Shown: in pieces, positions 1-32,656 of the stretch
Layout: the number at the start of each line of letters is the position of its first letter
How positions within the stretch are numbered: the stretch's first letter is position 1
NCBI GenBank assembly: GCA_964035545.1
Contig: CAXIUT010000103.1
Location: 620,001 to 684,000, forward strand
Reading direction: 5' to 3'
DNA: 64,000 nucleotides
Source: Bugula neritina
Lineage: Eukaryota; Animalia; Bryozoa
Notes under the pieces: model-generated
Told to the model about the DNA's origin: nothing
The model's input: the letters and a program-made list of their open reading frames with translations, nothing else
Databases searched by the model: none
Made by a program: the position numbers and the translations under genes

Positions 1-945
1 ACTCATCACTTGCATGTGTTTATAGACTTGATAAATTTTTTTATGCAAAACTTGATGCCTGCTTCAAAGACACCAGTGCTTAATTACTGTGTTAACTGTA
101 TTGGCACGTTGCCATGAGATATTTGGTAATATTTCGCATCACAACAAACTCTTCAGAAAGTTAAGAAAATCAGTCTAGAAAGTTAATGAAATAAACCTAC
201 CAGAAAGAGTAAGCCAGATGTAACAAGTAGATCCAAAACAAGTTGATTAACAATTGAAGTTGAAATCTCCATGTAGTCAACACTTTAGTCCTAATGTCAA
301 ATGCAAACGTCTGCAATCAAACTGTGTAGACTTCATGAGCTGGTTAGCTGAAAGGACTCATTAAAGTTCTTAACTCTTGTGTGTATAGTGATGCCCATCT
401 TGAACTAGAGAGGGCTGACTGAAGACTGCTACTTTGTGAAAATTGACAATGCATATTATTATTATTCATTGTTTAGATTCACGACTGCCATAAACAATGA
501 TAAAATATTCATTGTTGGTACTACTGAGTAGAATAAAATATAATATAATATTATTTTCTGGACAAATAAATAATATCAAATGCATATTATAACTTACCAT
601 AAATCTACAGTGCTTCACATCTTCACTTTTTTCTGCAATGTTATTTCTTTGCAGTTAGAAGTACTAGTTGAAAATATGACTATGAAACATAACCCTTCAA
701 TTTCATTGCACCAGCACCAGTTGCAAGATAGGTGTGTTGGGAGTTATCTTTCCCAAAATTTTGTTCTTTGTGTTTATACGAAGCAGACACAGGCTAATAT
801 TAGTTTTGTTATTTGCAAGAGTTTTTCTGTCTGATTGTCCATCAGCAAAAGTTTGGCCTTGCAGTTATTATGGAAATACCAGTGATGCTGGAAGACCTTT
901 GCATTGTACACCCGCTTTTACTATTGAATTTAGATGTTTTATTTT

Positions 946-974
946 CCCATCCCCTCTCCTGCCCCCCTGTCCCC
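946..974 (-). other. G-quadruplex-forming motif (one per satellite unit; first copy given)
   Basis: The minus strand reads GGGG-ACA-GGGGGG-CAGGAGA-GGGG-AT-GGG, which fits four G3+ runs with 1-7-nt loops. Confidence 0.6.
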
Positions 975-9900: not shown

Positions 9901-12900
9901 TACTGAGTAGAATAAAATATAATATAATATTATTTTCTGGACAAATAAATAATATCAAATGCATATTATAATTTACCATAAATCTACAGTGCTTCACATC
10001 TTCACTTTTTTCTGCAATGTTATTTCTTTGCAGTTAGAAGTACTAGTTGAAAATATGACTATGAAACATAACCCTTCAATTTCATTGCACCAGCACCAGT
10101 TGCGAGATAGGTGTGTTGGGCGTTATCTTTCCCAAAATTTTGTTCTTTGTGTTTATACGAAGCAGACACAGGCTAATATTAGTTTTGTTATTTGCAAGAG
10201 TTTTTCTGTCTGATTGTCCATCAGCAAAAGTTTGGCCTTGCAGTTATTATGGAAATACCATTGATGCTGGAAGACCTTTGCATTGTACACCCGCTTTTAC
10301 TATTGAATTTAGATGTTTTATTTTCCCATCCCCTCTCCTGCCCCCCCTGTCCCCTCTAACAACCAGCAATCCTGACTCATGTGAATTGTGTTATTGTTCT
10401 AGAGTTGGCCCATGGGCCTACAGTATACGATTTGAAGCTTTATAGTTTACAGGCAGTGGAGATGAGTCACTGCTAAAACCCATTTTGTTAGTAGACTATA
10501 TTGCTCTTCAATCATCAGTTTTCATATTAAAAGAGAAAGCTCATCTGCAGCGCCATTTCACAGTGTTTTATTTTGCTAGAGCAATAACTAATTTTAGATG
10601 CCTTTGCAAACATATGAGAAATAAATGAGTGATTCTATGAAAAGAGGTGTTTGCAGCAATTGTCCACTTTTGATTTACAAGCGGCATGGAAACTTTTGTA
10701 GTTTTAAATAATATCTCCAAACTCATCACTTGCATGTGTTTATAGACTTGATAAATTTTTTTATGCAAAACTTGATGCCTGCTTCAAAGACACCAGTGCT
10801 TAATTACTGTGTTAACTGTATTGGCACGTTGCCATGAGATATTTGGTAATATTTCGCATCACAACAAACTCTTCAGAAAGTTAAGAAAATCAGTCTAGAA
10901 AGTTAATGAAATAAACCTACCAGAAAGAGTAAGCCAGATGTAATAAGTAGATCCAAAACAAGTTGATTAACAATTGAAGTTGAAATCTCCATGTAGTCAA
11001 CACTTTAGTCCTAATGTCAAATGCAAACGTCTGCAATCAAACTGTGTAGACTTCATGAGCTGGTTAGCTGAAAGGACTCATTAAAGTTCTTAACTCTTGT
11101 GTGTATAGTGATGCCCATCTTGAACTAGAGAGGGCTGACTGAAGACTGCTACTTTGTGAAAATTGACAATGCATATTATTATTATTCATTGTTGAGATTC
11201 ACGACTGCCATAAACAATGATAAAATATTCATTGTTGGTAGTACTGAGTAGAATAAAATATAATATAATATTATTTTCTGGACAAATAAATAATATCAAA
11301 TGCATATTATAACTTACCATAAATCTACTGTGCTTCACATCTTCACCTTTTTCTGCAATGTTATTTCTTTGCAGTTAGAAGTACTAGTTGAAAATATGAC
11401 TATGAAACATAACCCTTCAATTTCATTGCACCAGCAGCAGTTGCAAGATAGGTGTGTTGGGAGTTTTCTTTCCCAAAATTTTGTTCTTGGTGTTTATACG
11501 AAGCAGACACAGGCTAATATTAGTTTTGTTATTTGTAAGAGTTTTTCTGTCTGATTGTCCATCAGCAAAAGTTTGGCCTTGCAGTTATTATGGAAATACC
11601 ATTGATGCTGGAAGACCTTTGCATTGTACACCCGCTTTTACTATTGAATTTAGATGTTTTATTTTCCCATCCCCTCTCCTGCCCCCCCTGTCCCCTCTAA
11701 CAACCAGCAATCCTGACTCATGTGAATTGTGTTATTGTTCTAGAGTTGGCCCATGGGCCTACAGTATACGATTTGAAGCTTTATAGTTTACAGGCAGTGG
11801 AGATGAGTCACTGCTAAAACCCATTTTGTTAGTAGACTATTTTGCTCTTCAATCATCAGTTTTCATATTAAAAGAGAAAGCTCATCTGCAGCGCCATTTC
11901 ACAGTGTTTTATTTTGCTAGAGCAATAACTAATTTTAGATGCCTTTGCAAACATATGAGAAATAAATGAGTGATTCTATGAAAAGAGGTGTTTGCAGCAA
12001 TTGTCCACTTTTGATTTACAAGCGGCATGGAAACTTTTGTAGTTTTAAATAATATCTCCAAACTCATCACTTGCATGTGTTTATAGACTTGATAAATTTT
12101 TTTATGCAAAACTTGATGCCTGCTTCAAAGACACCAGTGCTTAATTACTGTGTTAACTGTATTGGCACGTTGCCATGAGATATTTGGTAATATTTCGCAT
12201 CACAACAAACTCTTCAGAAAGTTAAGAAAATCAGTCTAGAAAGTTAATGAAATAAACCTACCAGAAAGAGTAAGCCAGATGTAACAAGTAGATCCAAAAC
12301 AAGTTGATTAACAATTGAAGTTGAAATCTCCATGTAGTCAACACTTTAGTCCTAATGTCAAATGCAAACGTCTGCAATCAAACTGTGTAGACTTCATGAG
12401 CTGGTTAGCTGAAAGGACTCATTAAAGTTCTTAACTCTTGTGTGTATAGTGATGCCCATCTTGAACTAGAGAGGGCTGACTGAAGACTGCTACTTTGTGA
12501 AAATTGACAATGCATATTATTATTATTCATTGTTGAGATTCACGACTGCCATAAACAATGATAAAATATTCATTGTTGGTACTACTGAGTAGAATAAAAT
12601 ATAATATAATATTATTTTCTGGACAAATAAATAATATCAAATGCATATTATAATTTACCATAAATCTACAGTGCTTCACATCTTCACTTTTTTCTGCAAT
12701 GTTATTTCTTTGCAGTTAGAAGTACTAGTTGAAAATATGACTATGAAACATAACCCTTCAATTTCATTGCACCAGCACCAGTTGCAAGATAGGTGTGTTG
12801 GGCGTTATCTTTCCCAAAATTTTGTTCTTTGTGTTTATACGAAGCAGACACAGGCTAATATTAGTTTTGTTATTTGCAAGAGTTTTTCTGTCTGATTGTC

Positions 12901-15614
12901 CATCAGCAAAAGTTTGGCCTTGCAGTTATTATGGAAATACCATTGATGCTGGAAGACCTTTGCATTGTACACCCGCTTTTACTATTGAATTTAGATGTTT
13001 TATTTTCCCATCCCCTCTCCTGCCCCCCTTGTCCCCTCTAACAACCAGCAATCCTGACTCATGTGAATTGTGTTATTGTTCTAGAGTTGGCCCATGGGCC
13101 TACAGTATACGATTTGAAGCTTTATAGTTTACAGGCAGTGGAGATGAGTCACTGCTAAAACCCATTTTGTTAGTAGACTATTTTGCTCTTCAATCATCAG
13201 TTTTCATATTAAAAGAGAAAGCTCATCTGCAGCGCCATTTCACAGTGTTATATTTTGCTAGAGCAATAACTAATTTTAGATGCCTTTGCAAACATATGAG
13301 AAATAAATGAGTCATTCTATGAAAAGAGGTGTTTGCAGCAATTGTCCACTTTTGATTTACAAGCGGCATGGAAACTTTTGTAGTTTTAAATAATATCTCC
13401 AAACTCATCACTTGCATGTGTTTATAGACTTGATAAATTTTTTTATGCAAAACTTGATGCCTGCTTCAAAGACACCAGTGCTTAATTACTGTGTTAACTG
13501 TATTGGCACGTTGCCATGAGATATTTGGTAATATTTCGCATCACAACAAACTCTTCAGAAAGTTAAGAAAATCAGTCTAGAAAGTTAATGAAATAAACCT
13601 ACCAGAAAGAGTAAGCCAGATGTAACAAGTAGATCCAAAACAAGTTGATTAACAATTGAAGTTGAAATCTCCATGTAGTCAACACTTTAGTCCTAATGTC
13701 AAATGCAAACGTCTGCAATCAAACTGTGTAGACTTCATGAGCTGGTTAGCTGAAAGGACTCATTAAAGTTCTTAACTCTTGTGTGTATAGTGATGCCCAT
13801 CTTGAACTAGAGAGGGCTGACTGAAGACTGCTACTTTGTGAAAATTGACAATGCATATTATTATTATTCATTGTTGAGATTCACGACTGCCATAAACAAT
13901 GATAAAATATTCATTGTTGGTACTACTGAGTAGAATAAAATATAATATAATATTATTTTCTGGACAAATAAATAATATCAAATGCATATTATAATTTACC
14001 ATAAATCTACAGTGCTTCACATCTTCACTTTTTTCTGGAATGTTATTTCTTTGCAGTTAGAAGTACTAGTTGAAAATATGACTATGAAACATAACCCTTC
14101 AATTTCATTGCACCAGCACCAGTTGCAAGATAGGTGTGTTGGGCGTTATCTTTCCCAAAATTTTGTTCTTTGTGTTTATACGAAGCAGACACAGGCTAAT
14201 ATTAGTTTTGTTATTTGCAAGAGTTTTTCTGTCTGATTGTCCATCAGCAAAAGTTTGGCCTTGCAGTTATTATGGAAATACCATTGATGCTGGAAGACCT
14301 TTGCATTGTACACCCGCTTTTACTATTGAATTTAGATGTTTTATTTTCCCATCCCCTCTCCTGCCCCCCCTGTCCCCTCTAACAACCAGCAATCCTGACT
14401 CATGTGAATTGTGTTATTGTTCTAGAGTTGGCCCATGGGCCTACAGTATACGATTTGAAGCTTCATAGTTTACAGGCAGTGGAGATGAGTCACTGCTAAA
14501 ACCCATTTTGTTAGTAGACTATTTTGCTCTTCAATCATCAGTTTTCATATTAAAAGAGAAAGCTCATCTGCAGCGCCATTTTACAGTGTTTTATTTTGCT
14601 AGAGCAATAACTAATTTTAGATGCCTTTGCAAACATATGAGAAATAAATGAGTGATTCTATGAAAAGAGGTGTTTGCAGCAATTGTCCACTTTTGATTTA
14701 CAAGCGGCATGGAAACTTTTGTAGTTTTAAATAGTATCTCCAAACTCATCACTTGCATGTGTTTATAGACTTGATAAATTTTTTTATGCAAAACTTGATG
14801 CCTGCTTCAAAGACACCAGTGCTTAATTACTGTGTTAACTGTATTGGCACGTTGCCATGAGATATTTGGTAATATTTCGCATCACAACAAACTCTTCAGA
14901 AAGTTAAGAAAATCAGTCTAGAAAGTTAATGAAATAAACCTACCAGAAAGAGTAAGCCAGATGTAACAAGTAGATCCAAAACAAGTTGATTAACAATTGA
15001 AGTTGAAATCTCCATGTAGTCAACACTTTAGTCCTAATGTCAAATGCAAACGTCTGCAATCAAACTGTGTAGACTTCATGAGCTGGTTAGCTGAAAGGAC
15101 TCATTAAAGTTCTTAACTCTTGTGTGTATAGTGATGCCCATCTTGAACTAGAGAGGGCTGACTGAAGACTGCTACTTTGTGAAAATTGACAATGCATATT
15201 ATTATTATTCATTGTTGAGATTCACGACTGCCATAAACAATGATAAAATATTCATTGTTGGTACTACTGAGTAGAATAAAATATAATATAATATTATTTT
15301 CTGGACAAATAAATAATATCAAATGCATATTATAATTTACCATAAATCTACAGCGCTTCACATCTTCACTTTTTTCTGCAATGTTATTTCTTTGCAGTTA
15401 GAAGTACTAGTTGAAAATATGACTATGAAACATAACCCTTCAATTTCATTGCACCAGCACCAGTTGCAAGATAGGTGTGTTGGGCGTTATCTTTCCCAAA
15501 ATTTTGTTCTTTGTGTTTATACGAAGCAGACACAGGCTAATATTAGTTTTGTTATTTGCAAGAGTTTTTCTGTCTGATTGTCCATCAGCAAAAGTTTGGC
15601 CTTGCAGTTATTAT

Positions 15615-15622
15615 GGAAATAC
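15615..15622 (+). repeat. Target-site duplication, left copy (GGAAATAC)
   Basis: Occurs once at this offset in uninterrupted units (e.g. 872-879) and is duplicated on both sides of the insertion. Confidence 0.92.
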
Positions 15623-16687
15623 CAGTGCATCACACGGCTTTTACGACTGTCAGGGTCGATCCTCATTTTGCCATTTTGCGATATTAGCCGCAATAAACAA
15701 TATATTTTCGTGCGATAACATCGACTGTCTAGGGCGCTACTGTTGACGAATCAGAACAAAGAGAGCACATGAGTGCTGTAAACATGTACGTGTTGTTATG
15801 GTTACTAATGATGATCTGCTAAGTAATTTTTGTAGTAGACAACTCTCACAGAAATCATTAATTTGTCTTTTCCTTATTTAGCTAACAACTTTTGCCTAGA
15901 AAAGAGAGAAGGCAAGGTGGCTCAAGCGATGCTGTATTTTTTTAGAATGTTTTAGCTTAAATTCTGTTTGGTTTATCCTACTAGAATGTTACCTGCTGCA
16001 GCATCAACACTATCATTGCAAAACTATATCTACTTATAACAAAATCTTGATGCCCATAGCAAAATTATCTACTTTATTGTGGCGGATGTGCAAGAGTTTG
16101 GAGTCATCTCATCAATTACACATAGCAACAGAAGAACACAATATAGAAATAACAGAAAGCCAAAGACGGTATACCTTTATTTTTAACCAAGAAAGAATTT
16201 TGTTAAACATTATATTGTTAAGTTCACCATAAAAAAACTGATTTTACAAGTGGTTACATCTTTTCCGAAAATAAAGGTGCCATGAAGCAGCCGAAAATGA
16301 AGTCGTCCGCTCACCAGACACCTAAAAAATAATTATGCAACATGATATTTTTAAAATTAAACACAGATATGCAACAGTCATCACCTACATAATTTTTTAT
16401 AAATTTAACAAGCTTGTTTAGTGAAAGTGTATAATACAAACACTAATGTTGATAGCGAAAATGCCATGTTCATGCAAGATAGTAAATCAATATAAATAAG
16501 AACTCATATCATATCTATGTTATATATGTATTCAATTCTGGTTTATGCTTTATGCCTTCAACTATGAGTGCACAACCACTAATCCTATTTCTACCAACAC
16601 CATCTCTACCGCTAACAGTACTAACGTCAGAACCAAAAACAACTTCACCACTACTACTAATAATTCTATTATTTTATTATTATTACT

Positions 16688-16853
16688 TCTACTACTATAC
16701 TACTATACTACTGCTACTACTACTACTACTAGTGCTACTGCTACTACTACTTCTACTACTGCTGCTGCTGCTACTACTTCTACTACTGCTACTACTGCTG
16801 CTACTACTACTACTGCTACTACTACTACTGCTACTACTACTTTTACCACTACT
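16688..16853. repeat. (ACT/GCT)n compound trinucleotide microsatellite
   Basis: Directly visible. It produces the poly-T/A, poly-L and poly-V ORFs in the track. Confidence 0.95.
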
Positions 16854-18699
16854 AATATTGTTTCTACTACAAATACTGTAAATCTTACCAGCAGCAAGTT
16901 ATATTGGAAACTGTTTGCTCATATTTTTATCATTGTATTAGTGCAATAACAAAATGTTTATATTTTAATATAGTCAAACCTTTTAAAAAACTAGGCTGCT
17001 ACTTATGAACTAAGAAGTTGTGCTACCCACCTTGATATGCACTCAGCTCCAACACCAAGCAGGTGGTTATGATGCTTCTCCACAATAGCCAGGCTATCCA
17101 GCTGTCCGATTGTATGCATCTACGTAAAAATTATTGGCATATGGTGCAAGAAATGATTAAAAACCAGATAGGTGTGCTAGAATTTATACAGCATAATATA
17201 GAGTAAGGTAAAAGAGAACAGACCGTCAAGTGGTACAGCATAGAAACAATTACTAGCTATTATATGCTTTATAGAAGTTGGCAAATTGTAGCCCACTAGA
17301 TATGAACTTTAGTTAGCATTTTATTTTGGCTTTCAGCAACTGCTTTAATCACTGATCTTGGTAAAACCAATATGTTTACAAATTAACACCTCCACTAGAT
17401 AGGTATACAGGTCAAAATATTCCAATTGGTGACATACTAAAAGAAAATGTATATTTATTCATTTTTAAAAGATTGCTAATAATTTATAAAACAGCGTCGA
17501 AATCACTAAAGTAACAGCGCAAATAAGTTTATTAAACAGCATTATAGGATTGCCTATTACTAGTTTCATGATTTCTATTATTTTACTGGTTTCAAACATA
17601 ATATAGGCTGAAAAAGCAATATTAGTTCTCTCACTTTTGCTAACTACATTGCTTGGAAGGCCATCATAATTAGATTAGATCAAACAAATGTGTTGACAGG
17701 TAGACTGGAACAGGCCTAAAATTTGCAAGGTATAATTTAAATTTATCTGGCCTGAAATTGCTGAAACTGACAATACAATAATATGAGAAACGAGCAGGGT
17801 TTTTTATTAAAGCTAGCAAAAATAATTCCTCTACATATAATTAACATACAGTCCATACATATAATATATTACTATGTCCAGGCAGCAGTGCTTGTTCTAG
17901 CCAAAAGAAAACTGATTTAATGGCTGATTTTAATGGCCAACAAGAAATTTATGGCGCACAGTGGCATTGTCATATTTTTAATATTCAAAATTACAGTTCT
18001 AATCTATCAATCATTTTATCAATACTACTATACTATAATCTACTCCTGCTGCTGCTGCTGCTGGTTCTACCACTGCTACCATACTGTTGAGTAATGCAAG
18101 CTAAGTAATTTAAATTACAATTAAAAAAGTTATCGGACTTTCTTTTCTATTACCTGTCTAGTTTAGCATTTCTTTCATCATAGCTTGCCATATTAACTTG
18201 AAAATTCACAGGGTTTGAGTTAGACCTATGGAATATACTTACAAGTAGAATGAACCCACAGTTCTGCAATATATCATAAAAACATTCAAAATAAAACTAT
18301 AGGAAAACCAAGTAAATGCTTCTAAGTATTAGCGCAAGTAAAGATGCTATGCAATCTATCCAACATGCAGCCAAATGTCTCAAAATAGGCTTCAGAGTTA
18401 TAAATATAAAATGTTTCCAAATCAAGGCTAGCAACACTTCTGTTGTTGTGATAGCAAATTTTGCTTAATAAAGTAAGGAAACCAGCTTCCCTTGCATGAC
18501 TCAATTTCTATTAAAGAAAAATTATACTCTCCTATAATCGCTGAAACACAGGCCTGTCACAAGTACATGAATGGTAAATCTAGATGTTTCCCTAAAACCA
18601 TCATCAAAACAGTAAACACACTGCAAAATATTTATTTTTACTTTTTCTGCTCAAACATTTAAATGGGCTCTGCAGGATATGACAAATACCAAAATAATT

Positions 18700-19200
18700 C
18701 CACTTTGTGAACTAGCAAATATGGACAAACAACCACCCTAATATTCACGCCAAAAGAAAAGTCTACGCAGTTGGTGTTCTCAGCATTCTTCCTTGTGGAT
18801 CAAAAACATGGGCAACATGTGGACTGCAAGAATCAAAGCTCAGCACTTTTCATACCTGGAGTTTAAGATGCATGTTGAGTAAAATCTGGGAAGATAAAAT
18901 GATAAATGAAGATGTATTTGAAATCACAGACTCGGATTCTCTTTCTTCAAAACTGAATTTCTTCTGTCTTCACTGGGCTGGTCAACATGCCAAAGTATCT
19001 CATCCGCCGCACTCGATTGCATGCATTAATATCAAAAGGAACTCATCCAGCTAGAAGAACTTATATCTAAGGTTTGAGGATGTCCTGAAACAAGAGCTTA
19101 AGGAATTTTACATAAAATCCAATCAATTTACCACCTCTCAAATGGAGGCAAAGCATTCTTGCAGGATGGGCATTCAACACTGGAAACAATATAAAGGGAG
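18700..19200 (+). mobile_element. RTE-clade non-LTR retrotransposon 3' fragment (degenerate)
   Basis: Reads IWTNNHPNIHAKRKVYAVGVLSILPCGSKTW...QESKLSTFHTWSLRCMLSKIWEDKMINEDVFE...LHWAGQH, later LRFEDVLKQELK and KWRQSILAG. These are typical post-RT motifs of RTE elements (K.VY...VLS.LLYGSETW; W.DK..N; LRWAGH). Boundaries approximate. Confidence 0.85.
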
Positions 19201-20569
19201 CTATGGCTAGATGTTCAAGACATGAATGCTAAGGGTGTCATGTATATGATCACTGAGATATTTATGACAATCTCTCAATATACCTTAGCATATTAAATAT
19301 GCTTGTAGTTATAGCTATTACTATAGTTGTTATATATGCTACTAACTAACAAGCAATAACCGTATTACAAACATAGGTGAATAAGAAAAATAATTCAACA
19401 GTGGTGATATCAGTATAGGTATTATAATTTAGCAATTGGCATACAAATTAAAAATGATGAATATAATGATGGTTAAAGTTATTAGATACCTAAACTTATA
19501 CCTATATTAATTAAAACAGTGACTTGTTGAAAAATAAATAAATTAATATTCATTAAAACTTTATTAAATTAAAAGATAATGTTGAAGTAAAATGAACAGT
19601 TAAAATTAATTTATTCACAATAATTTTAACTTTTTATGATCAACCTTAAAATAAAAACTCAAGTATTTGTAGCAAAGTTTTGAATAAAGTTGGATTTTGC
19701 AACGGTTTGAGATACTTTCACTAGCACTATGTGCATAACTGTATAAGTTTTATCATATTAATACAGTTACATACTCATACTCAAATATATAGTAACATTT
19801 TCAATAAATCAGGTATTGGTATTGAGATTGCGTTGGTCGAGATAACATCATGGTTACTCACTTATGGTTGTATACTTTAGCTTATACTTTTAGTTACATG
19901 TACTACTGCCCTATTATTAAACTTAATCTTAGTCTGTCATCACTTAGAAAACATAGTTCAGTCTTGAGGCAAATCAGTTTGAGTGTCGTTAGTTTCATTA
20001 CCACTAATCATTAGATTTAGTCAGTGTACTTAAAATTTATTGATCAATATTACCATCAAATTTAAGTGACTATTATTATGAATACTATATCTATCAAATA
20101 TCAAAAACTGCAAGCTTAATAAGTATGATTAAGAAAATCACAGCCAACATGGCGATGATTGAATTGTATGCTCGTGCTATTGAGATTCCTAACATAAAGG
20201 TTAACCTTACATAATGATTAGATAACAATCATATTCAATTTTTCATTACTGTCATTTGTTAGGAAAAGCATCCAGTCATAATTACTCCTATGCTCCAACC
20301 AAATAATTGCTTAGCCCCATTTAACAAAAAACCTTTCCCATCAGGGGTTTCTCACAGGGATGCCAACTATAAACTTGCGCAAGTTTTATTTAATAGTAAA
20401 TTAATTTACTTATATAAAAATTATTACATTCACAGTGATACATTGATGGTCATAATGTTTTATATATCAATATCATCATTATGATACAATTATCACTATT
20501 ACTATATGATATCTTATCAATAAAATTTCATAAAGTTCATGAAAAACATTAAATATAACAATTTAATTA

Positions 20570-21830
20570 AAACTAAATCACTGCCAAAGGGCAAGGTAGA
20601 GTCAAAATTAAATAAGCTATAGGGTGTAGGCTATAAGTGTAAGTATAATTATCACTATAAAACTAAGTGACTGATGAGTTGGTACTTGGTAGAATAAACA
20701 TAAAATGAACATAAACAATCATAAACTAAAACACCATTACATATATGATTTATGACCCTTTGGTTTCTATTTTTAATTTTAGCTTTACCTTGTCTTTTGG
20801 CATTGGTTATAGTATTAGTTTAGGTTACACCACTATCAGTTACTATGACTATGAGTATGAGTGAGTAGCCTTGCCCGTAGAACTAGGAGTAAGAGTAGAT
20901 CACTAGAAGTAGAAGTATGGGTATCGGGGTGTGACTATAAGTATAACTCATAGTCATAGTATGATTATCTTACTGAAAGTGATACTCATAAACCTCAAGT
21001 GATAATCATAATGATACTCAGCATGACATGTAAGGTGTATGATAGTCAGTCTCGGTTATACAGAGTAGAATATCAAACTTTAAGTTTAACTGCTACTTTG
21101 AAGTAGGACTTAGACATCACCATTTATGGGTATGTCATGCCGTCATAGACTATAGACATAGTATAAGGTTCTAATACTATAAGTATAACTATTACTACTA
21201 TAAGTATAAGTCTTTAAGTTTAAGTATAACTATATTTACTATTGATTAATTTCGATTTGATACTATTACTATTAGTAATACTGTATTAGTATTAGTATTA
21301 CACTTTACAGTATTACTATTAGTATTAGTTGATCCCATACTGATAGTGATACTCATACCACTACCATTATGATTATGATTAAGAGTACTACAGTGAGTTA
21401 TACTCACAGCTATACTGATTACTAATTTAAGATCACTCTAATCAGTAACTGTTATCACTAAGTATTAGTGGATTATTTATCATTTTATGATTTTATCATA
21501 GTCATAGTGAAACTGATTGAGTAATACTTATAGTTATAGCTATATTCATATTGGTAGTGATACTGATAGTGATGCTGATAGACTTAGACTTAGAGTTAGA
21601 GTGTGAGTCAGAGTGAGAGCGATATTCATGTTTATAAATATGATTATCATTATAACTAAGACTAAGAGTAAGAGCAAATGTAAAGTCTAATCGTGACATT
21701 ATAACTATTACCATTAGTGCATTCGTATTACTATTAGTATTAGTATTACTAATTATTAATCTATTTTCCAATAATAACCATGCATATGCCCTAGCCTATA
21801 ACTATAAGTTTGAGCACGCCTATGGTATTC
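20570..21830. repeat. Low-complexity region with degenerate hexamer periodicity (AGTATT/AGTATA/ACTATA-like)
   Basis: Recurring tagtat, agtata, actata and gagtaa motifs. The alternating-residue ORF 21502-21771 (SNTNTNSN, SISITISIT) reflects a 6-bp period. Confidence 0.75.
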
Positions 21831-22232
21831 AAAATTGAAATTGAATCTTTGGGTCATTTGACCAAAGGAGCCGCGGACTCAATTAGGCATTGGACCTTGG
21901 GGGCGATTCTAGTGTTCAAGTAGAACCGATATTCGGTCAAAACAGGTCTGGTCTATCATGGTGGCCAGTAATTTATCTGCGCAAATTTACTCGACTCTTG
22001 TGTTCATAATAAACTCGGCCTGACTACTCCGCAAATGGGGCGATAATCATAAATTTCATAATAATATATTATTAGAGACTAATTTAGTATGTATACACAT
22101 GTCGGTAATTACAATCTAGTTCCATTCTTCAGGAAAACCCATTACGGATCAGGTTGGTACTATTGCTATTAGGTTGAGAATATTATTAGTAAAACAATCA
22201 CAATGTGCTCATTTTTGATATAAATTATTATT

Positions 22233-22312
22233 ACTACTAGTACAGTAGTAGTACTAGTAGTAGTAGTACTCTAGTTACTAGTACTAGTAGTAGTAGTAGG
22301 CCCACTAGTAGT
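22233..22312. repeat. Degenerate (TAG)n microsatellite
   Basis: Runs of tagtagtag and tactag. Confidence 0.85.
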
Positions 22313-22684
22313 TATGGTGTCTAATACCTTGATTGAGAACTGTGAAAATCATTAGATTTAGTGATAACAGACTACCACTGTAAGTCTGTAAGTGCTTTAG
22401 TACTAGATGTACCACAAGTATCAATGCTTTAGGTTTTTATGGTGTTAAATACTCATTTTTTACAGTGATTGTTATTTTATTGGTACGTGTTCTGTTACTT
22501 GTGAGTATTGTTACAATTCCAAATGAATAAGCCATTTTAAGTAAATACTCTTATACGGTGTGAATATTGATATGAATTATATGTTTCACATTTACCGCTA
22601 TAGTTTTATCAGTATGATATACATTTTTTTAATAATAATGATCATAAAACATCATCATTAAAAGTGTAAAGTTTTACTCCACTT

Positions 22685-23200
22685 TTTGGGACCAGTTGCT
22701 GCTTCTGGTAGCATAGGTAGAGTCTTTGCTCATTTATCCTAACACACTAAGGTTTGAGTTTTATCTTTATTGCAACATCCAAAAACCTTTGCCGACCTTG
22801 TTCTTACAATCAACTATGAAACCTTGTGAGTCTATGCCTAGTAGATGCATTACTGATAAATAACTAATAATATCTGCTTGTTATATGGGGAAGAATTTTT
22901 TGCATAGTAATTTCTCTCGTGTTTGTATTTTGATTTTTCTAATGTCAATATACTTAAGAAATATCCTGGAAAGCATTTTTTGCCAGTTCATTTCTTCTCT
23001 TTATTTCTTGTTCATTTTAACCATGCAATATCAGTTATTAACTCTCCAAGGTATACTGTTTTAATTATTCGTTGCTCTGGTGTAGCATCTAGGATGGTGT
23101 TGATTTTAAGTGTGGTGCAGACTTTTTGAAAATCATGGCTTTTGTTTTAAAACCTTTCTTATCCATATCACAAAGTTTTCTTGCTTGTTTACCGCAATGA
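22685..23200 (-). mobile_element. RTE-clade LINE fragment (degenerate, internally deleted)
   Basis: The minus strand gives, with frameshifts, KTKAMIF, VYLGELITD, EQEIKRRNELAKNAF, RKIKIQTREKLL, GRQRFLD and YATRSSNW, in the order expected for the RT C-terminus and tail of RTE elements. Confidence 0.75.
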
Positions 23201-23643
23201 GTCTTAATCTAAATAAAAAAGCAATATTTGATCAATTAAATTTTCAATCTGAAATTGGTTTTCAAACTGCTTTTGCCATTTAGTGTTCTTTTGCTGATGC
23301 TATATTAATGTGATTTTAAAAGGGAGTTTGCTGCGTTATTAGATGTACTTATAATATGGGTATTTAAGTTCAATGGGAATATAAATATCCTTTTCATTAT
23401 TGAAATGTTCACAATGACAACTCTGTTCATATGAGCTGCTGACTACAACTTAAAAGTTATCTGTTTGGAATGATTTTTATAGACTCTTGATAATGATTGC
23501 GTATGATTTACAGTACAATACTATTTACCAACTATTGTTCGATGGTCACATGTCTTGTTTTATTTTTTCATTTTTTTTGTTTTCAATATGAGCAAACAAG
23601 TAAGAATTGTATGGGTACGTTAAATTATTATTTAATTTTTCAG

Positions 23644-23769
23644 AATATTTCAGTTGGTGACCACTGTGGAGGAATTGAATGGAAAGCTGCAAAGACGGTT
23701 TCAGGCACTTATATGTAAGGCATTGGATATGGAGAGAGGGAGATCTGTGCTTATCCTTATATAATGCAA
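23644..23769 (+). pseudogene. Degenerate exon of KDZ/Zisupton-type transposase
   Basis: Bounded by ttttcag| and |gtaagt. Reads NISVGDHCGGIEWKAAKTVS, then through frameshifts RH / LICKALDMERG / EICAYPYIMQ. This matches the recalled Zisupton-type pattern CG..W.AA...CRH..L.AL(N/D)M.RGE..AYP..LQ. The intervening LDE.G segment appears deleted. Confidence 0.75.
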
Positions 23770-24391
23770 GTAAGTTAATTAATGTATTGCTGGCTTTTAT
23801 TTATATGCATATAAAGTTTGTTTAGTGACTATTTGTGCTTGAAATTATTTGCAAAATTTAATTTGTCCTCTGCTTATAAAAATCTATTCAGAACTTTTTG
23901 CCTGTAGAATCTTCAACGTTTTAATTATATTTTTGTGGAGTTTTAGAAACAATTTCTTGGTACACAATCTGTTGCTACCAATGTAAGGTGACGGTACTTC
24001 TCTTGACTTCTAAAATGCAAGCAAAGCTTGTTTCCTCTCACGATTACTTTTTGAGTGTGATGTTCGCTAAGGCACACATTTGAACATGTCAGTTACTACA
24101 CTTTAATAGATGTTTTAGTATTAGATATATTTTAGTTTTAGGTAACATGAAATATTGAAAATAATGTATGCGAATCTGGTGAATGTTTAGACTTCAACTA
24201 CCCCTATGCAAATGCAGGTTTAAACCATATAATCAAACTAAAAATCAATTATTTTTCTTTATATTTGATTTCTAGTTTTTTAGGTGAGAACTTGTTTTGT
24301 TTTGTTAAAAATTGTGGTTGGAAAATATCCTTATTCACCAGGCCACAGCTGCAACATTTACACTGCATGTCATCGTGATTTATGATTGAAG

Positions 24392-24509
24392 GCTAAGTGC
24401 AGTGGTAGAGTGTGGCAAGGCATAGGTCTAAGTACTGAAGAGACCACGGAGCAGAAAAATATTTATATCTCAAGATGTGGCTTGATTACACAGCATATGA
24501 ATTATGATG
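24392..24509 (+). pseudogene. Degenerate exon of KDZ/Zisupton-type transposase (catalytic Glu region)
   Basis: Reads AKCSGRVWQGIGLSTEETTEQKNIYISRCGLITQHMNYD followed by |gtaac. This matches the KDZ pattern G...G.G.T.GE..EQ.NS.LSR....T..M and lies in the correct order downstream of the previous exon. Confidence 0.8.
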
Positions 24510-26399
24510 GTAACAAAATATATGCCTTTCAACTTTAAAGTTTTTTTAAGCTTGCATTAATCTTATTCAAGATAGTATCTGTCCAAGCATTTAACAGCAC
24601 ATTGTATAAGGTTTTGCAAATGTTATTTAACTTTGTTTACTACTTGTTTTTTGCTATTTTCAACAACTCGAACATGCCGCCAGTTTTTGTAATTTTCAAA
24701 CAAGAAATTTCACAAACTCCATCAAATTGATTCAAATAGATGTTATATGCACTATGCAGTTACAAAAGAATATTTTATTAACTAATTATGAGTCATAGTG
24801 TGTTGTAAAAATCTAAAACTTAACTATGTATTATTATGTCTCGTAAGACTATTTTTCAAAAAATTCCAAAGGGTTTTATTTATATATAACTCAAAGCCTG
24901 CAAAGTTTTTTTTTGTCCAAAGTTCTTATTGTGACAATTAAAAGTCACATCATAGTTTTTATTCTGTTGAATTACTTCATCACCCTTCGAAATTATTTCT
25001 TTCACTATGATTATTATAGTTGCTACCTATGATTACCTAATTCAACATATATTCTTATTGTTATCAATTTTTTTTCATAACTGTCTTAATTCCATTTTCA
25101 AAAACGTATTTAAAAATGATATTAGCAAGTTGAATAGTTAGTTAAATGTGGCTTCAGATGCCATACGTGCATACATTGTCACTTTTTACATAGGCAATCA
25201 TTGTATTTCCTAAATTAATTATTTCTTTTTAGTTTAAAATGAACTACTCGATGGCTGTTGTGGTGAAGCTGAAAAATGCTGACATAGAAGATGTAATGGA
25301 AAGACTTTGTTTTGCTTGTCCAGGTAAATCATTTGTACAAAATTAAAAGTCTATTATGATAACAGATGATCTAAAAATAAATTGCATATCTTAAGGCTTA
25401 GTGGTAATATAATATACTTTGAGCACAAATTTAAATGATTAAAAAGCCCTGCATTGCTTACCTAGTATATTATCTCTTTACACATATTAGAAAAAGAAGT
25501 CATCATAATTTTTTTACTACAGAACATAGTCAAATTATTACATTTACTTTTACATGAATAATCAGTTTCTCAGTTTTTTTCTTTATCTTCATGAACAAGC
25601 ATTAACTTTGAAGACCTAAAAATAATGCACACAATTTTGAGGTATTTTTCTTCTTAAGTGTTTAAAATGTTTGACAGTTGGAAGAATATTTGGACATGAT
25701 GTCAGTATGTTTCCTAGTTTTTCATATGGTTGAACTTGATTTTTGTCATTCTCCTATACTCCTCAAGTGTGGAGTCCTGAATGTACACTTTTACTACGCT
25801 ATTGTTCAGGGTTGTTTTAATTTTACTCTGTTACTTTACTATATTTTAATCAACAAACCCCTAATTTATATTGATGGTATTTATGGTTATATTTTAGTCA
25901 AGCTGACCTAACACTTGTTCAGTTCAGGCTCATCAATGTATGTTTGGTTTAGAAAATTAAACTGCAATGTGAAGTATTCAGACTAGTTACTTAACTAAAA
26001 AATGCACTAAATGCAAGGAAATATTATGTTAATATTTGTTACCATAGTTCATTTCAAACTCATACATGTGATCAACAAAATACTTCATTTTGTTTTGCAG
26101 TGTAATCAAGATGAAATTATGAATGATGAAATTATGGATGGCAGCCAATTTATTTTGACTATCAGACAAGGACTACAGTTTTTATGGTAATTTCAATTTT
26201 TGAATATATCTCTTATATTATACATAAAATGTTCACCTTCTGCTTTAATTTGCAGCCAGGTTTTACTCATGGCTGCTGTATTCAAGTCACCTCATCACAC
26301 AGCCAATCTACAAGACTGTCATAAAAGTTGCTATTATATTTTTTCACCAATTAATTAAAAGAAATAGAACTTCGGCTTCACAAGTGGTGTCACTCTCAT

Positions 26400-26679
26400 A
26401 CTCATTGTTTTACTTAATTTTGCCATCCTCCTATTCTTCACTGTATTCTTTTAGGTCGCAGTGTTCTGCACTAATCTATGATCTCTTTTGATTTTTAACC
26501 CCCATGTTTAAATGTTTTGGTCTTGCTCCCTTTCTCTGGAGTTTCACACTGATGTAGCTGATTCCCTTCTTGTTTTATTGTTCTCTGCTGCATAGGTGCC
26601 CATATTATTCCAGCCTTCTCTTTCCCACAAATATAGTTACTGCATTTACTGCCGCCCTGTCTCAGATCCCTTCATTTCT
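26400..26679 (-). mobile_element. RTE-clade LINE 3' fragment (degenerate)
   Basis: The minus strand reads RNEGI*DRAAVNAVTIFVGKRRLE*YGHLCSRE, matching RNE.IR.R..V.......RRL.WYGH..R. It abuts the MITE at 26680. Confidence 0.6.
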
Positions 26680-27184
26680 GGGAACGAAGCAATATTCCGA
26701 AGGCCCATTGCTCCGAAGGTCCATTAGTCCGAAAATTAGTACACACAGGCATCCTCACTGAGAATATCATTAATATCACTCACAATTCAGTTTAAGTTCT
26801 TGCTATATTATTGATCTGTGGGTGGCATGCGTGTTGCCTATTTGTGATTGTTTAGCCTGAGATTACACTATGATCAATAAGGGCTGTATCGTTTATCAAC
26901 ATTCCATTATGGCTGCTCCATAAACAAAGTACACACCAAGCTATTCATTAGCCTGTCACCTCGCAAGCCTGTAATTAATAATGTACCGTACGCATAATCA
27001 TGTTGATAGATGATGTAGCAAGTAGGCAACACACATGCCACCCACAGAGCAATAACATAGCTAGAACTTAAACTGAATTGTGAGTGAAATTAATGATATT
27101 CTCATTGAGGATGCCTGTGTGTACTAATTTTCGGACTAATGGACCTTCGGAGCAATGGGCATTCAGAATATTGACTAGTTACCC
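26680..27184. mobile_element. MITE / fold-back element (~505 bp) with ~165-bp terminal inverted repeats
   Basis: 26680-26844 is the near-perfect reverse complement of ~27020-27184. Ends are GGG...CCC. The arms contain ~15-16-bp TCCGAAGG(T/C)CCATT subrepeats. No coding capacity; TSD not clear. Confidence 0.88.
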
Positions 27185-28169
27185 TCATTGCTTATGTAGC
27201 ACAACTCATCTCCATGAAACCTAATTGATCCTCTAGGTACTAAGAACTAGGGGCTGTCTGCAGTCATAATTTATTGCCAAAAGACATTGTCAGTCAAATG
27301 CACATTTTATATCAGCATTTTCAATTTTGTTGGCGTCTTCTTGATGGAGCCTTACCCTATTTCTTTTTCTACCCCTGTTTTGCATACTCTGTTGCTATGT
27401 GTCACTTCAATGAAACCATCGCCTCAACTTATTTAGTTTGACTGTTGAAATATATTTTGCTTTTACAGGTCTAAAAGAAAGTGGCCATTTGAGTTTAAGT
27501 GCAGCTTCACTATTGACAAGAACATCTACGTTAGAGAAGAAAAGCATCTAGCTATATAATCAAGATGATTTGCATCCTGATTGTTACGATACCGCATGGT
27601 TCTGTTGTCATACTATTGTTCTTTCATACCTTTGTACTTTTTATTGTAAAGAGCTAGGCTTGAGCTCTGTAATAGGCAAGCCTACAATATATATTGACTG
27701 ACAACAAATATGTCATCTCTCTCCCACATAATCGCAAGGAGTTACATTCTAGTATTGGTTCTAAAAACTCACACCTTAGTAATTAGATGCATAGCACAAA
27801 GTCTTAGCAATAGGGAGTATTGGTAAATTTTCCACATGAGTGGTGAGGAAATAACACTAACTTGAGACCTTTCTAAAACTCAACATTGCATTGCAAATAA
27901 GCTATACTTATTGTGCTTTATTCAGTGCTAGCTGGTATTTTTCAGACTGTTGGCCACAGCAAAGTATTTTGCCTTTTTTTGTACACATAGCCTAATGGTT
28001 GATTTAAGAAAATTGGAAGCTGCAGCCTACATGCACTGCAATTCATCATTCTCATTCCGAAATGGATTTCTCATCACCTCATGGAACTAATTACATAACG
28101 AAGGACACCACAACTGATGAGTTACTGCAACTACAAATTCACAAAATGCTCAGTCATAGAAGCGAAGTA

Positions 28170-28330
28170 CACTGCGTTTCCATTATCGCATTATGCGAAT
28201 GGATTTTTTCATTCGGCTAATGGGAACAGTTACATCCGATGAAACGCAACTATAAGTTAATGCAAACCACAAACCGCAAATAATCCGTACAGAATTCATT
28301 CGCATTATGCGAAGTCATGGAAACGCAGTG
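28170..28330. mobile_element. Small MITE (161 bp)
   Basis: Perfect 14-bp TIR CACTGCGTTTCCAT...ATGGAAACGCAGTG, extending imperfectly to ~35 bp. The quasi-palindrome TCGCATTATGCGAA occurs in both arms. Confidence 0.8.
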
Positions 28331-30326
28331 ATAAAGAAGTCAATGTCAGCCCTGGTGAATATTTACCTAAAAGGCAACAAACAAATTTTACTGCACCATT
28401 TCAACAAGTTAAGATATAAAACGCCTATTCTTTTAATTTGATTGTTCAGCTTGGTTTTATTTTTAGATTGTACCAGCTGGTGCAATAAAAATATATTTGG
28501 AAAGGCTTCAGTTTTATAGAGGAAAAGCAGTGAAATAACTTTCGTTTTACCATGCACCCCTAATCAACGCTCTTGTAGTTTAAGAGCTTAGGTTAATAAA
28601 GTTTCTCAGCTAATTAATCCCACCTGCACACATTTTTACACATAATTATCAGTCGTCTCAGCACCATGCAATAGTTAGATTAAAAGGGTCATTTATTGAC
28701 AATTAAAAGCCATAGTTAGCAGAGTAGTTAAAAGCCTTTTTTCAATAATAAGTTTTTGGTTGCATTTTTCAAGTTATTCTTTCATTGTAAATTAAGATAA
28801 AAACAAAAACTGCAGGGCTTACCTACAGCCAAGTAGAGAAATTATATTCAATATGCTGTCAAAGGCAAACAAACTATATGAACTATTATAATATGATATT
28901 AACTATGCACATGTGCTATGCTTCTATTTATTTTTGAATTGTGGCTCAGATATGCTAAATACTCGAACTGCGGTTACTTCTTTTTCTGTTCAGCTGTATA
29001 AGTCAATAGGTAGTATTTTAGGATTGAAGTTTTTTCTTAAATAGAATTTCTATAGGGTAGTCTTTAGTATAAATTCTTTGTCTGCTAAAATCTATGAGCA
29101 AAATAATATTTATAGTACTCTGTTTTGAAAGAATAGCACACCATTTGGTACAGGAATTTGGCCCCTATAAAAATGCAAGTGTTGGTGATGGAAGTAGTAA
29201 ACGAATTGCTACTGCAAGTGTAGAGTAGTGTGACTTTCAGCCATGACAGAACGTACTTCAGAGCATAATGACATAGCATAACGTCAATAGTTGTGCATTA
29301 CACGGTTTAGTTGCCTGCTGGCCCGTTTGTAACACATTCTGTTAGTGCAAATAAGTGGTAATCCAGTAGGCCTAATGGAACTGCATTCGTGAACTATTTA
29401 TAGTTAACATATTATGTCAACCACAATATCATTACCCTTTGACCATCTTTGTTTTCCATATGCCTATTGTGAACTGCATAATGTTAGCCAACATGTTTTG
29501 TAAGCTTATCAGTTTAGCTATAGCTATATAAATGCTTGTAAGCTTGCTCGCACCTGGCAATACCATGGTAGGCCAACTGCTAGGACCATGACTAGTGCAG
29601 CCACAATTAATATAACCAACCAGCTTTCACTGTAGTGTGGCCATATGTTTGGCTTTGTTAATATTTTGTCAGAGTGCAAGTCTCAACTGATGCCATAAAT
29701 TGCAATGTGAAAACTATCATGAATCAAGTAATATGTTGGTAAAGATATGCAAAAATGTATAACAAGTCACAAAGTTATCTCAAAACAATCAGGGTTTCAA
29801 ATTTCATCACTGATGGCCATAGCTCAAGCAAGTTGAATATCATTGCAACAAAAAGGAAGCAACTTATTTTCTCCAAAAAATTTGTTATTGTAAAAATAAG
29901 TAAAATTAATTTAATTTTTAAAATTTACCTCTAATATTAGTTTAGATCTTTTCATGATTTGCGGACGTAAACCTAAAATTAAGGCTGCATGCATGTTTTC
30001 TCAAACCAAAGTGTGTTTACCTATAAAAGATAATTTGACTTGTCAATCTATTACCTAGGTCCTAGTACATCAGTGTATATTTATATACCATAGCTCTGAC
30101 CGCTGGCTGTGCCTTAGTAATAATATACAAACTACAGTTTATTTTTAACCGTTGGTTTATTTAATCAAGATACCTTTGCAAGTAGCAACAGAGTCATAGG
30201 CCAATTTTAAAACAAGATGGCAATCCACTGCTAGTAAACACCCTGATGGAATATAACCCACTCATTTTTCTAGCTGTTGTTTATATCATTATAGTATAAT
30301 CCCTTATGTATTGGCATTCTTCCTAA

Positions 30327-30411
30327 GGTGATGCATTGGCTTCGTGGTAAACCGCGTTTCCTTTGCACTCATTGGGTATGGGTTCAATCCTCGCAGTTAG
30401 CTAAATTTTTT
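30327..30411 (+). mobile_element. tRNA-derived SINE head or tRNA pseudogene
   Basis: A-box-like TGGCTTCGTGG (30337-30347) and B-box GGTTCAATCC (30381-30390) at tRNA-like spacing, followed by a T-run at 30406-30411. No clean cloverleaf. Confidence 0.55.
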
Positions 30412-30834
30412 GCAATCTTGCATTCTTGTCAAATACTTCCACTAAATTATTTTTACTAATTTTACACATTGATATGTGTAATAATAGTGATGGGTCAAAT
30501 ATGACTATAGTTGTAGAATTTCTTTCACTTTTTAAATAACACTCAACAGGTGGACAGTGTATATAGTACATACATATTAGTTAGATACTGAACACTGGGC
30601 TAAATATAGGGTTTAGTTATTAAGTAAATATTGATAGTTGGTGCAATAATGGAGAAATTAAGTTATGTACATGTTCTTGTGATTACATTTTTATTAACCC
30701 GCACCCCACGCTAAAATTTGTTATCCAGATGAAGAAGGTTAAGCTATCAAAGCTTTTAAATTACTGCACAGAAGTGTAAAAATAGCAGCCTATTTCTTCT
30801 TGTTATATAGTGAAATGACATTCATTATGTATAT

Positions 30835-30837
<3 letters not shown>

Positions 30838-30902
<65 letters not shown>
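30838..30902. repeat. (TA)n microsatellite, ~32 units
   Basis: Directly visible. Confidence 0.98.
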
Positions 30903-30905
<3 letters not shown>

Positions 30906-32648
30906 AATTCTGTTACATCATATTTTAGCTTTAAAACAAGCATGTTATGTCCATTTGTTTATCACACCCCTGCAGTAAATATGTCAAAAATTCCTTACTT
31001 TTGCTACCTAAAATTTTTTTTAAAATATAAGCAGCTACATAGAGCATTTTTTCAAGTTAGAAAATATGTATATATATTTTTAACTACGTTTTAAAAGGAA
31101 TACAAATATGTAAACCCCAAAGCAGTGATTGTCTTCTTTCAATGCCATATTTTTGATGACACCAAGAAAGAAGGTGATAATGCAACTCCTAAGAGCATGT
31201 GCACTATGTCGCTCCTCTCATGTCTGAGAGTATACCATTTGTATTAATGTATGAAGTCTTCAACATATATTTCAACTTATTTTTGCAAGTAACTCATGAC
31301 AGTAAACTATATGCTTGCTTTTCTTCATGTGTGTGTGCATGTGTGAGTGTGTGTGTAAAAATGCAGCACTCATAATAGTTGCTATTTTATGAACAGCTTA
31401 CTATAGCTACAGTTATATGTAATTGCATGGGAATGTTGCAAGTGTTTGCTAAAAGATGGTATATATAAAACATGTCGACGAATTTGTTGTAGAAAAATTT
31501 AAATAATTACTTAGCATTTAGCAATAAAATTGTTCATGTACAAATCAGAAACACCAAGTTGTATGCATATATTTCAAATAGTATGCATGAATTTGCAAAA
31601 AAAACTAGAACTTATACTTTCACTATGAGTATATGTTTTATATATGTGCTCATTTTGTATATACTGCACAATATGTTATTTACAATGTTAAACCAAAATA
31701 ATCAGAACTCAATATAGTGTAATACAGGCACATCTAAAATGTTAACAAATATAACATTAAAAACAAGAAACAAAATTGTTGGTATCTTTTACTTAATTTT
31801 TTACAAGCAAAAAATTATTCTTGCCGCAAACTAAATTTAAATGCTGAGGTTCGTAAAGTTATATGTTTGTTAAATTATTTTGCATTTGTTTATATTCTAC
31901 AAATAATTTCTACATCTTTTATATAATTGCGATATTTCTTTTCGTCTACTACATGCAGCTCATTATATGCATATGTAGGCTATATACAATGCAGCATAAA
32001 ATTTTATAATACTAAGCAAAAAATGCTATGAAAATAAAAACATTTTACAAAATGATATTATATTATGGTAGCAATAAAGTTGTAATAGACTATTATTTAA
32101 TGAGAAGACAATTATGTCTTTATAATGAAGATTGATAAATTTATAATATGAGCTGAAATTGAGTGAGAAGACAATTATGCTTTCAAAATACTTACAAGAC
32201 TAAATTCTTATCTAATAGCTACAGTAATTAATATCCTTTGTTTAGAACAAAGTCTCAAAGGAGCGGATTTAAATAAAAATTCAGACCTGCATTTGTTAAA
32301 GCTTTTCAATCAAAATTATTACATTATATTATTCTTTCTCATAACTCCTAGCTTCTTAAACCTTTTGCATGAAAAAATTGATTTAGAATGCAAATTACTG
32401 CTAGAAATTGCCGTGTTTTAATGTCAACCCTAACTGTATCCACCACTTGTTTTAGTTGTTACGATCGTTGCCTAACCAATGAAGTTGAACTGGTTGTACC
32501 TCCAGCCAATCAATTACTTATTTCAATTGCGCCTCATTAGGCTAGGATCGTTGACGAAATCTATATAATGTAATACAAATCCCATTACCACTGATTGACC
32601 CGAAGTTCTCTACGACTTCTATAGTGGTATAGGATAATAGATATACTG

Positions 32649-32656
32649 GGAAATAC
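32649..32656 (+). repeat. Target-site duplication, right copy (GGAAATAC)
   Basis: The junction reads ...GATATACTG|GGAAATAC|CATTGATGCTGG, and the satellite continues in register. Confidence 0.92.

Follow-up and report, generated by a model that had tools for sequence, protein, structure and literature searches.

A 17-kb insertion in a Bugula neritina macrosatellite: a decayed, non-autonomous member of a KDZ/Zisupton-type transposon family, probably mobilised in trans

A stretch of 64,000 nucleotides from the bryozoan Bugula neritina (contig CAXIUT010000103.1, positions 620,001 to 684,000; this whole stretch is called the window below) consists almost throughout of a macrosatellite, whose units of 1,341 bp are ~99% identical to each other in a self-BLAST. 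The array is interrupted only once, by an insert of 17,026 bp. What is this insert, and what could have moved it? An earlier note, made from the letters alone, had described it as a giant Zisupton/KDZ-like DNA transposon freshly inserted into the satellite. The observation as a whole was confirmed. The explanation that we favour, with a probability of roughly 85%, is more specific: the insert is the non-autonomous, decayed A form of a young family of very large cut-and-paste KDZ (Kyakuja-Dileera-Zisupton) transposons, and it was moved by the transposase of a longer form of the same family, termed C.

Self-BLAST and unit variants place the left part of the macrosatellite at 1-15622, and self-BLAST places its in-register continuation at 32649-64000, both on the + strand. 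The interrupted unit aligns up to 15624 on the left and continues from 32649 on the right, and 8-10 bp of the unit are covered from both sides. The letters are ...GGAAATAC/CAGTGCATC... at the left junction and ...GATATACTG/GGAAATAC... at the right one, so that an 8-bp target site duplication (TSD), GGAAATAC, is present at 15615-15622 and again at 32649-32656. The element between the two copies occupies 15623-32648 (+ strand). Inside the window, 34 uninterrupted target sites were counted, which serve as empty-site controls. The exact 8-bp TSD, the return of the host unit in perfect register, the set of about 34 intact units and the giant size of 17 kb had all been described in the earlier note, and each of these descriptions holds. 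The left boundary requires some care. As 18/35 satellite units themselves read GGAAATAC-CAGTG, the first five bases of the element mimic the displaced satellite, and judged from the window locus alone the boundary can be shifted by up to 5 bases. We set it at 15623 because the other copies of the family fix it there and because Logan contigs of two runs break exactly at this position into other flanks.

The ends of the element are widespread in the genome. In the 216-Mb assembly the first and the last 500 bp gave 30-40 matches each, which pair at a distance of 17-32 kb, and ~30 genomic copies carry both termini. Both junctions could be compared in the window copy and eight others, and perfect, mutually different 8-bp TSDs were found in 9/9 of them (the eight others: ATTTAAAG, GTTAAAAA, CACTTACA, GCAAATTT, GCCCTGCC, GCAATTAT, AATTTTAC and CATTCGTT). 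The 3′ flanks are distinct in 31/31 copies and display a weak target preference, with a purine at position 1 and A and C at positions 7 and 8. The search for both ends at other loci with other duplications, suggested by the earlier note, thus had a positive outcome. The TSDs at the level of the family, together with the distinct flanks, exclude chance, segmental duplication and misassembly as general explanations.

The copies fall into several forms. Form A (~17.0 kb) comprises nine copies including the window copy, with 99.0-100% identity to the latter over ~9.85 kb; this close match to eight sister copies bears out the claim of a fresh insertion. Form A′ (18.1-18.6 kb) is form A plus a segment of 1.17 kb at a TGAT microhomology. 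Form B (17.4-20 kb) matches A over ~6.7 kb at its start (94-96%) and over 0.65 kb at its end (78-85%). Form C is represented by five copies of 26-32 kb, which share with A the element positions 1-2919 (97-98%), blocks up to position 7582 (93-94%) and the last ~1.6 kb (91-96%). A fragment of a long interspersed nuclear element (LINE) is common to A and B and absent from C.

One of the A copies lies inverted in the same satellite (C112:601154-618179), 17.4 kb from the window element and 1.8 kb to the left of the window. Over ~15.7 kb (element positions 1278-5878 and 6001-17026) it does not differ from the window copy. The satellite runs in a single orientation to the left and right of either copy, and the two are inserted at different unit positions, which rules out a fold-back artefact or a copy made by unequal crossover. 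Local transposition accounts better than unequal crossing-over for an inverted, identical neighbour that occupies another unit position. The left flank of this neighbour ends in ...TTGCAGTTG. In unit phase this lies ~12 bp upstream of the target of the window copy, and the final base of the flank departs from the unit sequence. The right junction of the neighbour was sought by pattern, with no match.

The nature of the transposase became visible in the C copies. In a genome-wide search with PF18758, all five displayed three collinear KDZ exons on the element's strand, ~10.5-11.3 kb from the 5′ end. The exons cover positions 54-111, 108-165 and 165-205 (of 217) of the domain model with 28.9, 20.5 and 18.2 bits, of which the first exceeds the Pfam cut-off of 26.6 bits. 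An exon with a sub-threshold match to the CxC3 domain (PF18804), a domain that is also listed in the precomputed Pfam data for a related protein (P0002), is located ~1.4 kb upstream of the KDZ exons on the same strand. As a proxy for the C copies we used L051, a metagenome contig of 8,073 bp, which was reached via a protein of 123 amino acids matched by a B-type CxC3 relic as query. Along its full length, L051 matches the interior of each of the five C copies at 94-96% identity. Its CxC3 exon, an exon with the motif HIDGNMKLYKY and its three KDZ exons (26.4, 21.7 and 20.2 bits in Pfam) are all open. They join in frame at canonical GT-AG borders, with exons of ~110-180 bp and introns of 110-250 bp, and form a multi-exon gene. 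The ESM Atlas features of the last KDZ exon point to KDZ in 72/100 matches, with a best score of 0.96. A separate KDZ gene family with single open frames of 451 amino acids and 38.8 bits was found at C4:11721561, C4:11728328, C5:10985459 and C8:6196648; its structure is unrelated to the multi-exon gene.

Comparison with L051 revealed the remains of the same gene in the window copy. Window positions 23638-26183 are collinear with positions 3048-7117 of L051 at a DNA identity of 66-82%, and tblastn against the L051 KDZ exons gave matches at 23650-23775 (E 3e-5), 24009-24125 (E 1e-8) and 24386-24577 (E 2.6e-15). Three KDZ exon relics follow each other on the + strand. The first (23644-23769, PF18758 ~55-99) has kept its AG acceptor and GT donor, has lost 53 bp including the Cys-Arg-His motif, and contains an in-frame TAA. 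The second (23947-24092, PF18758 ~120-165) has a TGG codon turned into the stop TGA, has lost 1 bp and reads TT in place of GT at its donor. The third (24392-24509, PF18758 ~165-203), with the motif GLST-E-ETTEQ, is the best conserved, showing 53-62% amino-acid identity to L051 and a tblastn match that extends to 24577. Fainter traces on the same strand are a downstream transposase exon at 25254-25337 (44% over 34 amino acids to L051 4828-4956) and a further exon with an acidic tail at 26077-26130 (67% over 18 amino acids; DNA 82% over 117 bp). In the comparison with L051, two exons were absent from form A, that of CxC3 and the one that carries the first catalytic aspartate ('DGN'). The exon-by-exon alignment also led us to reject the idea that the interior of the element is unrelated cargo.

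Two intron-bounded segments with KDZ motifs had been pointed out in the earlier note. They correspond to the first and the third KDZ exon, and the conserved AG acceptor and GT donor lie exactly at the borders given there, 23644 and 23769; the relic at 23947-24092 had been missed. The Pfam check proposed for the two segments gave no match at E up to 10, and their homology was instead recognised through the alignment with L051. Likewise, a Pfam search of all stop-free pieces of at least 36 amino acids on both strands found no KDZ or CxC match in the window copy, nor was a usable match obtained for the best relic exon in the ESM Atlas. The KDZ/Zisupton-like assignment as such is supported by the CxC3 exon and three collinear KDZ exons of the C copies, by the decayed homologues kept in the window copy and by the 8-bp TSD.

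Form B retained the opposite part of the gene. It has kept the upstream exons, including a CxC3 relic (Pfam E 2.3e-4) with a TGA stop, and has no KDZ exons. Since A and B hold opposite exon sets, they look like complementary deletion derivatives of one gene. Neither form is able to make a transposase. The window copy is non-autonomous because the CxC3 and first catalytic exons are gone and those that remain are damaged by deletions, stops and the loss of a splice donor. The transposon reading of the earlier note thus stands as regards a KDZ-type element; the window copy itself is not functional and is better described as a defective mosaic, mobilised in trans.

The termini of the element are short. 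The 5′ terminus CAGTGCATC (15623-15631) and the 3′ terminus GATATACTG (32640-32648), both given on the + strand, take the form CAGT...ACTG and are inverted at 7/9 positions, with perfect agreement at CAGT/ACTG only. The 9-bp imperfect terminal inverted repeats noted earlier correspond to these ends, and no inverted repeat longer than the 9-bp ends was found at the termini. KDZ elements without clear inverted repeats are on record (PMC12730594, PMC11343200). Further inwards, a subterminal CGAC-N7-GTCG is located at element positions 22-36. CpG-containing motifs crowd at the ends (15623-15760 and 32550-32648), where 3/6 CGAC of the whole 17 kb lie less than 100 nt from a terminus. Motifs in direct orientation are ACGACT at +21 and -37 and GTTGACGAA at +119 and ~-97. 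CGAC, ACGACT, GTTGACGAA and CGAC-N7-GTCG may be considered candidate transposase-binding sites.

How could a copy with a dead gene have moved? The window copy is incapable of making the enzyme and yet 99-100% identical to eight sisters, which argues for recent movement in trans. Its helper was almost certainly the enzyme of the 26-32 kb relatives. The multi-exon CxC3-KDZ transposase from the C copies, or from a close relative, would recognise the terminal and subterminal sequences common to A and C, excise the element and insert it at a staggered 8-bp cut, and repair of this cut would give rise to the 8-bp duplication. We infer both the activity of the C-type protein and the cut-and-paste chemistry from these features. 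The history of the window copy seems to be composite. The ends are 91-98% identical to C and the gene relic only 66-82%, and a drop this sharp means that uniform decay cannot account for the mosaic. Recombination or template switching is its likely origin, with a C-like element and an older relative as partners, for example in gap repair after excision.

Several points weigh against this explanation. The inverted repeat is minimal, with four perfect bases, and the termini are also compatible with YARNG, the consensus for hAT. The CxC3 exon of the C copies reaches 22-23.5 bits, below the cut-off of 26.6, and no SWIM domain (PF04434) was matched inside any family copy; as this domain is short and can be split by introns, the negative is a weak one. 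The intactness of the C-type gene rests on ~2.6 kb of exons on the proxy contig L051. The C-type 3′ end is 91-96% identical to that of A, which makes cross-mobilisation plausible but unproven. Finally, mobility is deduced from copies and TSDs rather than from excision or polymorphic insertions.

The strongest competitor concerns the identity of the helper. Instead of a C-type gene, the source of the KDZ enzyme could have been an intact copy, so far undetected, of the older lineage represented by the A and B relics (~70% DNA identity to C). Such an 'AB-type' ancestor did exist, as indicated by the LINE fragment present in A and B and missing from C, and the relics in A and B are equally distant from L051 and C (66-82% and 70% DNA identity). 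However, the genome-wide PF18758 search, in which the best candidates only were scored, returned the five C copies and the single-exon 451-amino-acid family and no third multi-exon type. We regard an older helper as improbable.

Mobilisation by a transposase of the hAT superfamily, with the KDZ pieces as passenger DNA, appears less probable still. Duplications of 8 bp, as seen in this family, are also made by hAT elements, the termini of the type CAGTG...CACTG fit YARNG, and the genome contains intact-looking hAT genes, for example frames of 563 amino acids with a Dimer_Tnp_hAT match of 65.5 bits. The combination of 8-bp TSD and YARNG-like termini is shared by hAT and Zisupton, and does not discriminate between them. 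No hAT transposase is encoded by any copy, and among 20 genomic matches to the hAT dimerisation domain (PF05699) none lies inside a family copy (0/20). Instead, pieces of one CxC3-KDZ gene occur in all three forms, with relative place and strand unchanged from form to form, and the full set is found in the largest. This is the pattern expected of deletion derivatives of an autonomous KDZ element. Moreover, hAT inverted repeats are typically longer than 4-9 bp.

A misassembly, or else a rearrangement or segmental duplication within this repeat-rich contig of 738 kb, can practically be dismissed: the contig is mostly satellite, a second, inverted and identical copy lies 17.4 kb away and no contig or read among those listed (short Logan contigs only) bridges the junction, but the same termini and TSD length recur at 8 other loci on six other contigs, the satellite keeps its orientation around two copies at different unit positions, and contigs of two runs break exactly at 15623.

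A KDZ element of form A, moved in trans by a C-type enzyme, can be compared with known systems. The Zisupton superfamily in the sense of Repbase consists of the Zisupton and Dileera clades of KDZ, as Bohne et al. 2012 is quoted in PMC9297572 and PMC12730594. A TSD of 8 bp is described for Zisupton and Dileera and one of 7 bp for Kyakuja (PMC12730594), and multi-exon transposases are described for Zisupton (PMC9297572). The present family shares with this superfamily the 8-bp TSD, the KDZ domain (PF18758), here following a sub-threshold CxC cysteine cluster, the many small exons and the large size. It differs in its inverted repeat of four perfect bases (7/9) and in that the window copy is a dead mosaic derivative. 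In addition, canonical Zisupton has CxC4 and SWIM (PMC11343200), whereas the present family has CxC3 and no SWIM was found in its copies. In transposase domain, TSD length and multi-exon gene the family fits the KDZ/Zisupton superfamily, as a candidate member of the Zisupton or the Dileera clade. Kyakuja has CA...TG termini with virtually no inverted repeat (PMC12730594), as seen here, but its duplications are 7 bp in contrast to the 8 bp of 9/9 copies.

The closest parallel in size is Zisupton-3_cRei of Chlamydomonas reinhardtii, an element of 31.7 kb for which excision was recorded in a mutation-accumulation line (bioRxiv 10.1101/2022.05.23.493040). Like the present family it is a giant KDZ/Zisupton element, in the size class of 17-32 kb and with evidence of recent mobility. 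It is single-copy and resides in a green alga, whereas the family described here has ~30 copies in three forms, mostly non-autonomous, in another host. The elements KDZ1-3 and KDZx1 of Cryptococcus measure 6.4-10.9 kb, were termed 'gigantic' and have been shown experimentally to be mobile (PMC11343200). Common features are the CxCn and KDZ gene, the 8-bp TSD (KDZx1), additional non-transposase DNA and weak or undetected inverted repeats (KDZx1); the Cryptococcus elements are fungal and 2-5 times smaller. Zisupton is also on record in lancelets, sea stars, mussels and nematodes (PMC9297572). With Zisupton-3_cRei and these invertebrate records in hand, neither the giant size nor the invertebrate host is new. 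Set against published descriptions, the elements probably form a new family of a known superfamily, and thus a real example of a known transposon class and not a new class.

What the family adds is a documented case of KDZ/Zisupton outside fungi, fish and algae, in which the ends and TSDs are defined and an autonomous-type form stands beside two complementary deletion forms. It indicates that an element of 17-32 kb can move although it has almost no inverted repeat, and that in non-autonomous copies the interior can be far older than the near-identical ends. For annotation, a large gap in the satellite array is explained, and ~30 loci (~0.6 Mb) are assigned to one transposon family. Furthermore, single-exon Pfam searches miss decayed KDZ genes, which are exposed by comparison with a better-preserved sister copy.

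A bolder extension, which we put forward as speculation and consider doubtful, is that the family is active now, with the CxC3-KDZ transposase from the 26-kb copies moving elements of 17-32 kb in trans, with almost no inverted repeat and with young ends on an old body. If true, it would rank among the largest currently mobile cut-and-paste systems in an animal. The family may also tend to land near a CAGT-like satellite motif: two identical copies are inserted ~12 bp apart in unit phase, and the end of the element mimics its target. The resemblance between end and target may reflect target preference or coincidence. The neighbouring inverted A copy also adjoins a GCAGT motif.

The remaining parts of the window copy are as follows. 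The 5′ region common to all subfamilies (15623-18541, + strand) is 97-98% identical to the KDZ-bearing long copies and includes a (TAC)n array at 16684-16878, one of several microsatellites within the element. On the minus strand of this region, RNA-like Logan contigs of two runs join an exon at 17031-17100, with the donor side AG/GTGGGT, to an exon at 16258-16321, which provides the acceptor side. The join from 17031 to 16321 removes a canonical GT-AG intron of 709 nt, and a next donor, GTAACC, follows at 16257. The spliced minus-strand transcript (16258-17100) contains no recognisable Pfam domain, and one of its RNA-like contigs has an odd palindromic end.

The fragment of a non-LTR (long terminal repeat) retrotransposon, the LINE shared by A and B, is nested at 18542-20381 (+ strand). 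Its reverse-transcriptase tail at 18716-19051 was read from the peptide and has no Pfam match. The remainder of the shared 5′ region (20382-23204, + strand) consists of blocks with 93-94% identity to C and has low-complexity tracts at 21264-21749 and 22232-22310. Downstream of the gene relic follow an inverted pair at 26680-27183, with arms of 165 nt that are 92% complementary and 174 nt apart, and an old nested copy of a dispersed repeat of ~3.6 kb at 27631-30657 (+ strand). The latter is 67-78% identical to five loci and harbors an insert of ~165 bp at 28168-28333 that resembles a short interspersed nuclear element (SINE) or a miniature inverted-repeat transposable element (MITE). The 3′ region common to the long copies (31053-32648, + strand; 91-96%) completes the element. 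One plus-strand stop-free piece of the element matched the Pfam model AA_permease_2 (E 3.8e-4); ten GC-richer candidates were negative, and the match is probably compositional.

Two Joint Genome Institute (JGI) metagenome contigs, L052 and L053, contain a related CxC3 exon with 63% amino-acid identity to the B-type CxC3 relic. They share with the window element the SINE/MITE-like repeat and a 122-bp non-coding block (window 20257-20378, 81%), which was considered as an exon and rejected on account of stops and indels in all frames. The source of both contigs is either a close relative or, within a host-associated metagenome, the host itself. Runs in which the sequence was detected belong to a single organism and to marine plankton, seawater and symbiont metagenomes. 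Introns on the contigs that harbor the family are ordinary, at 100-700 nt. In run X1 the word depth of the satellite is ~100 times that of the ~30-copy element, which suggests thousands of units and several Mb of satellite, word depth being a poor measure of copy number. Outside any listed copy, C7:11939205-11940439 is 75% identical to window 16900-18030; the shared 5′ region may have originated here, or the locus may be a diverged fragment.

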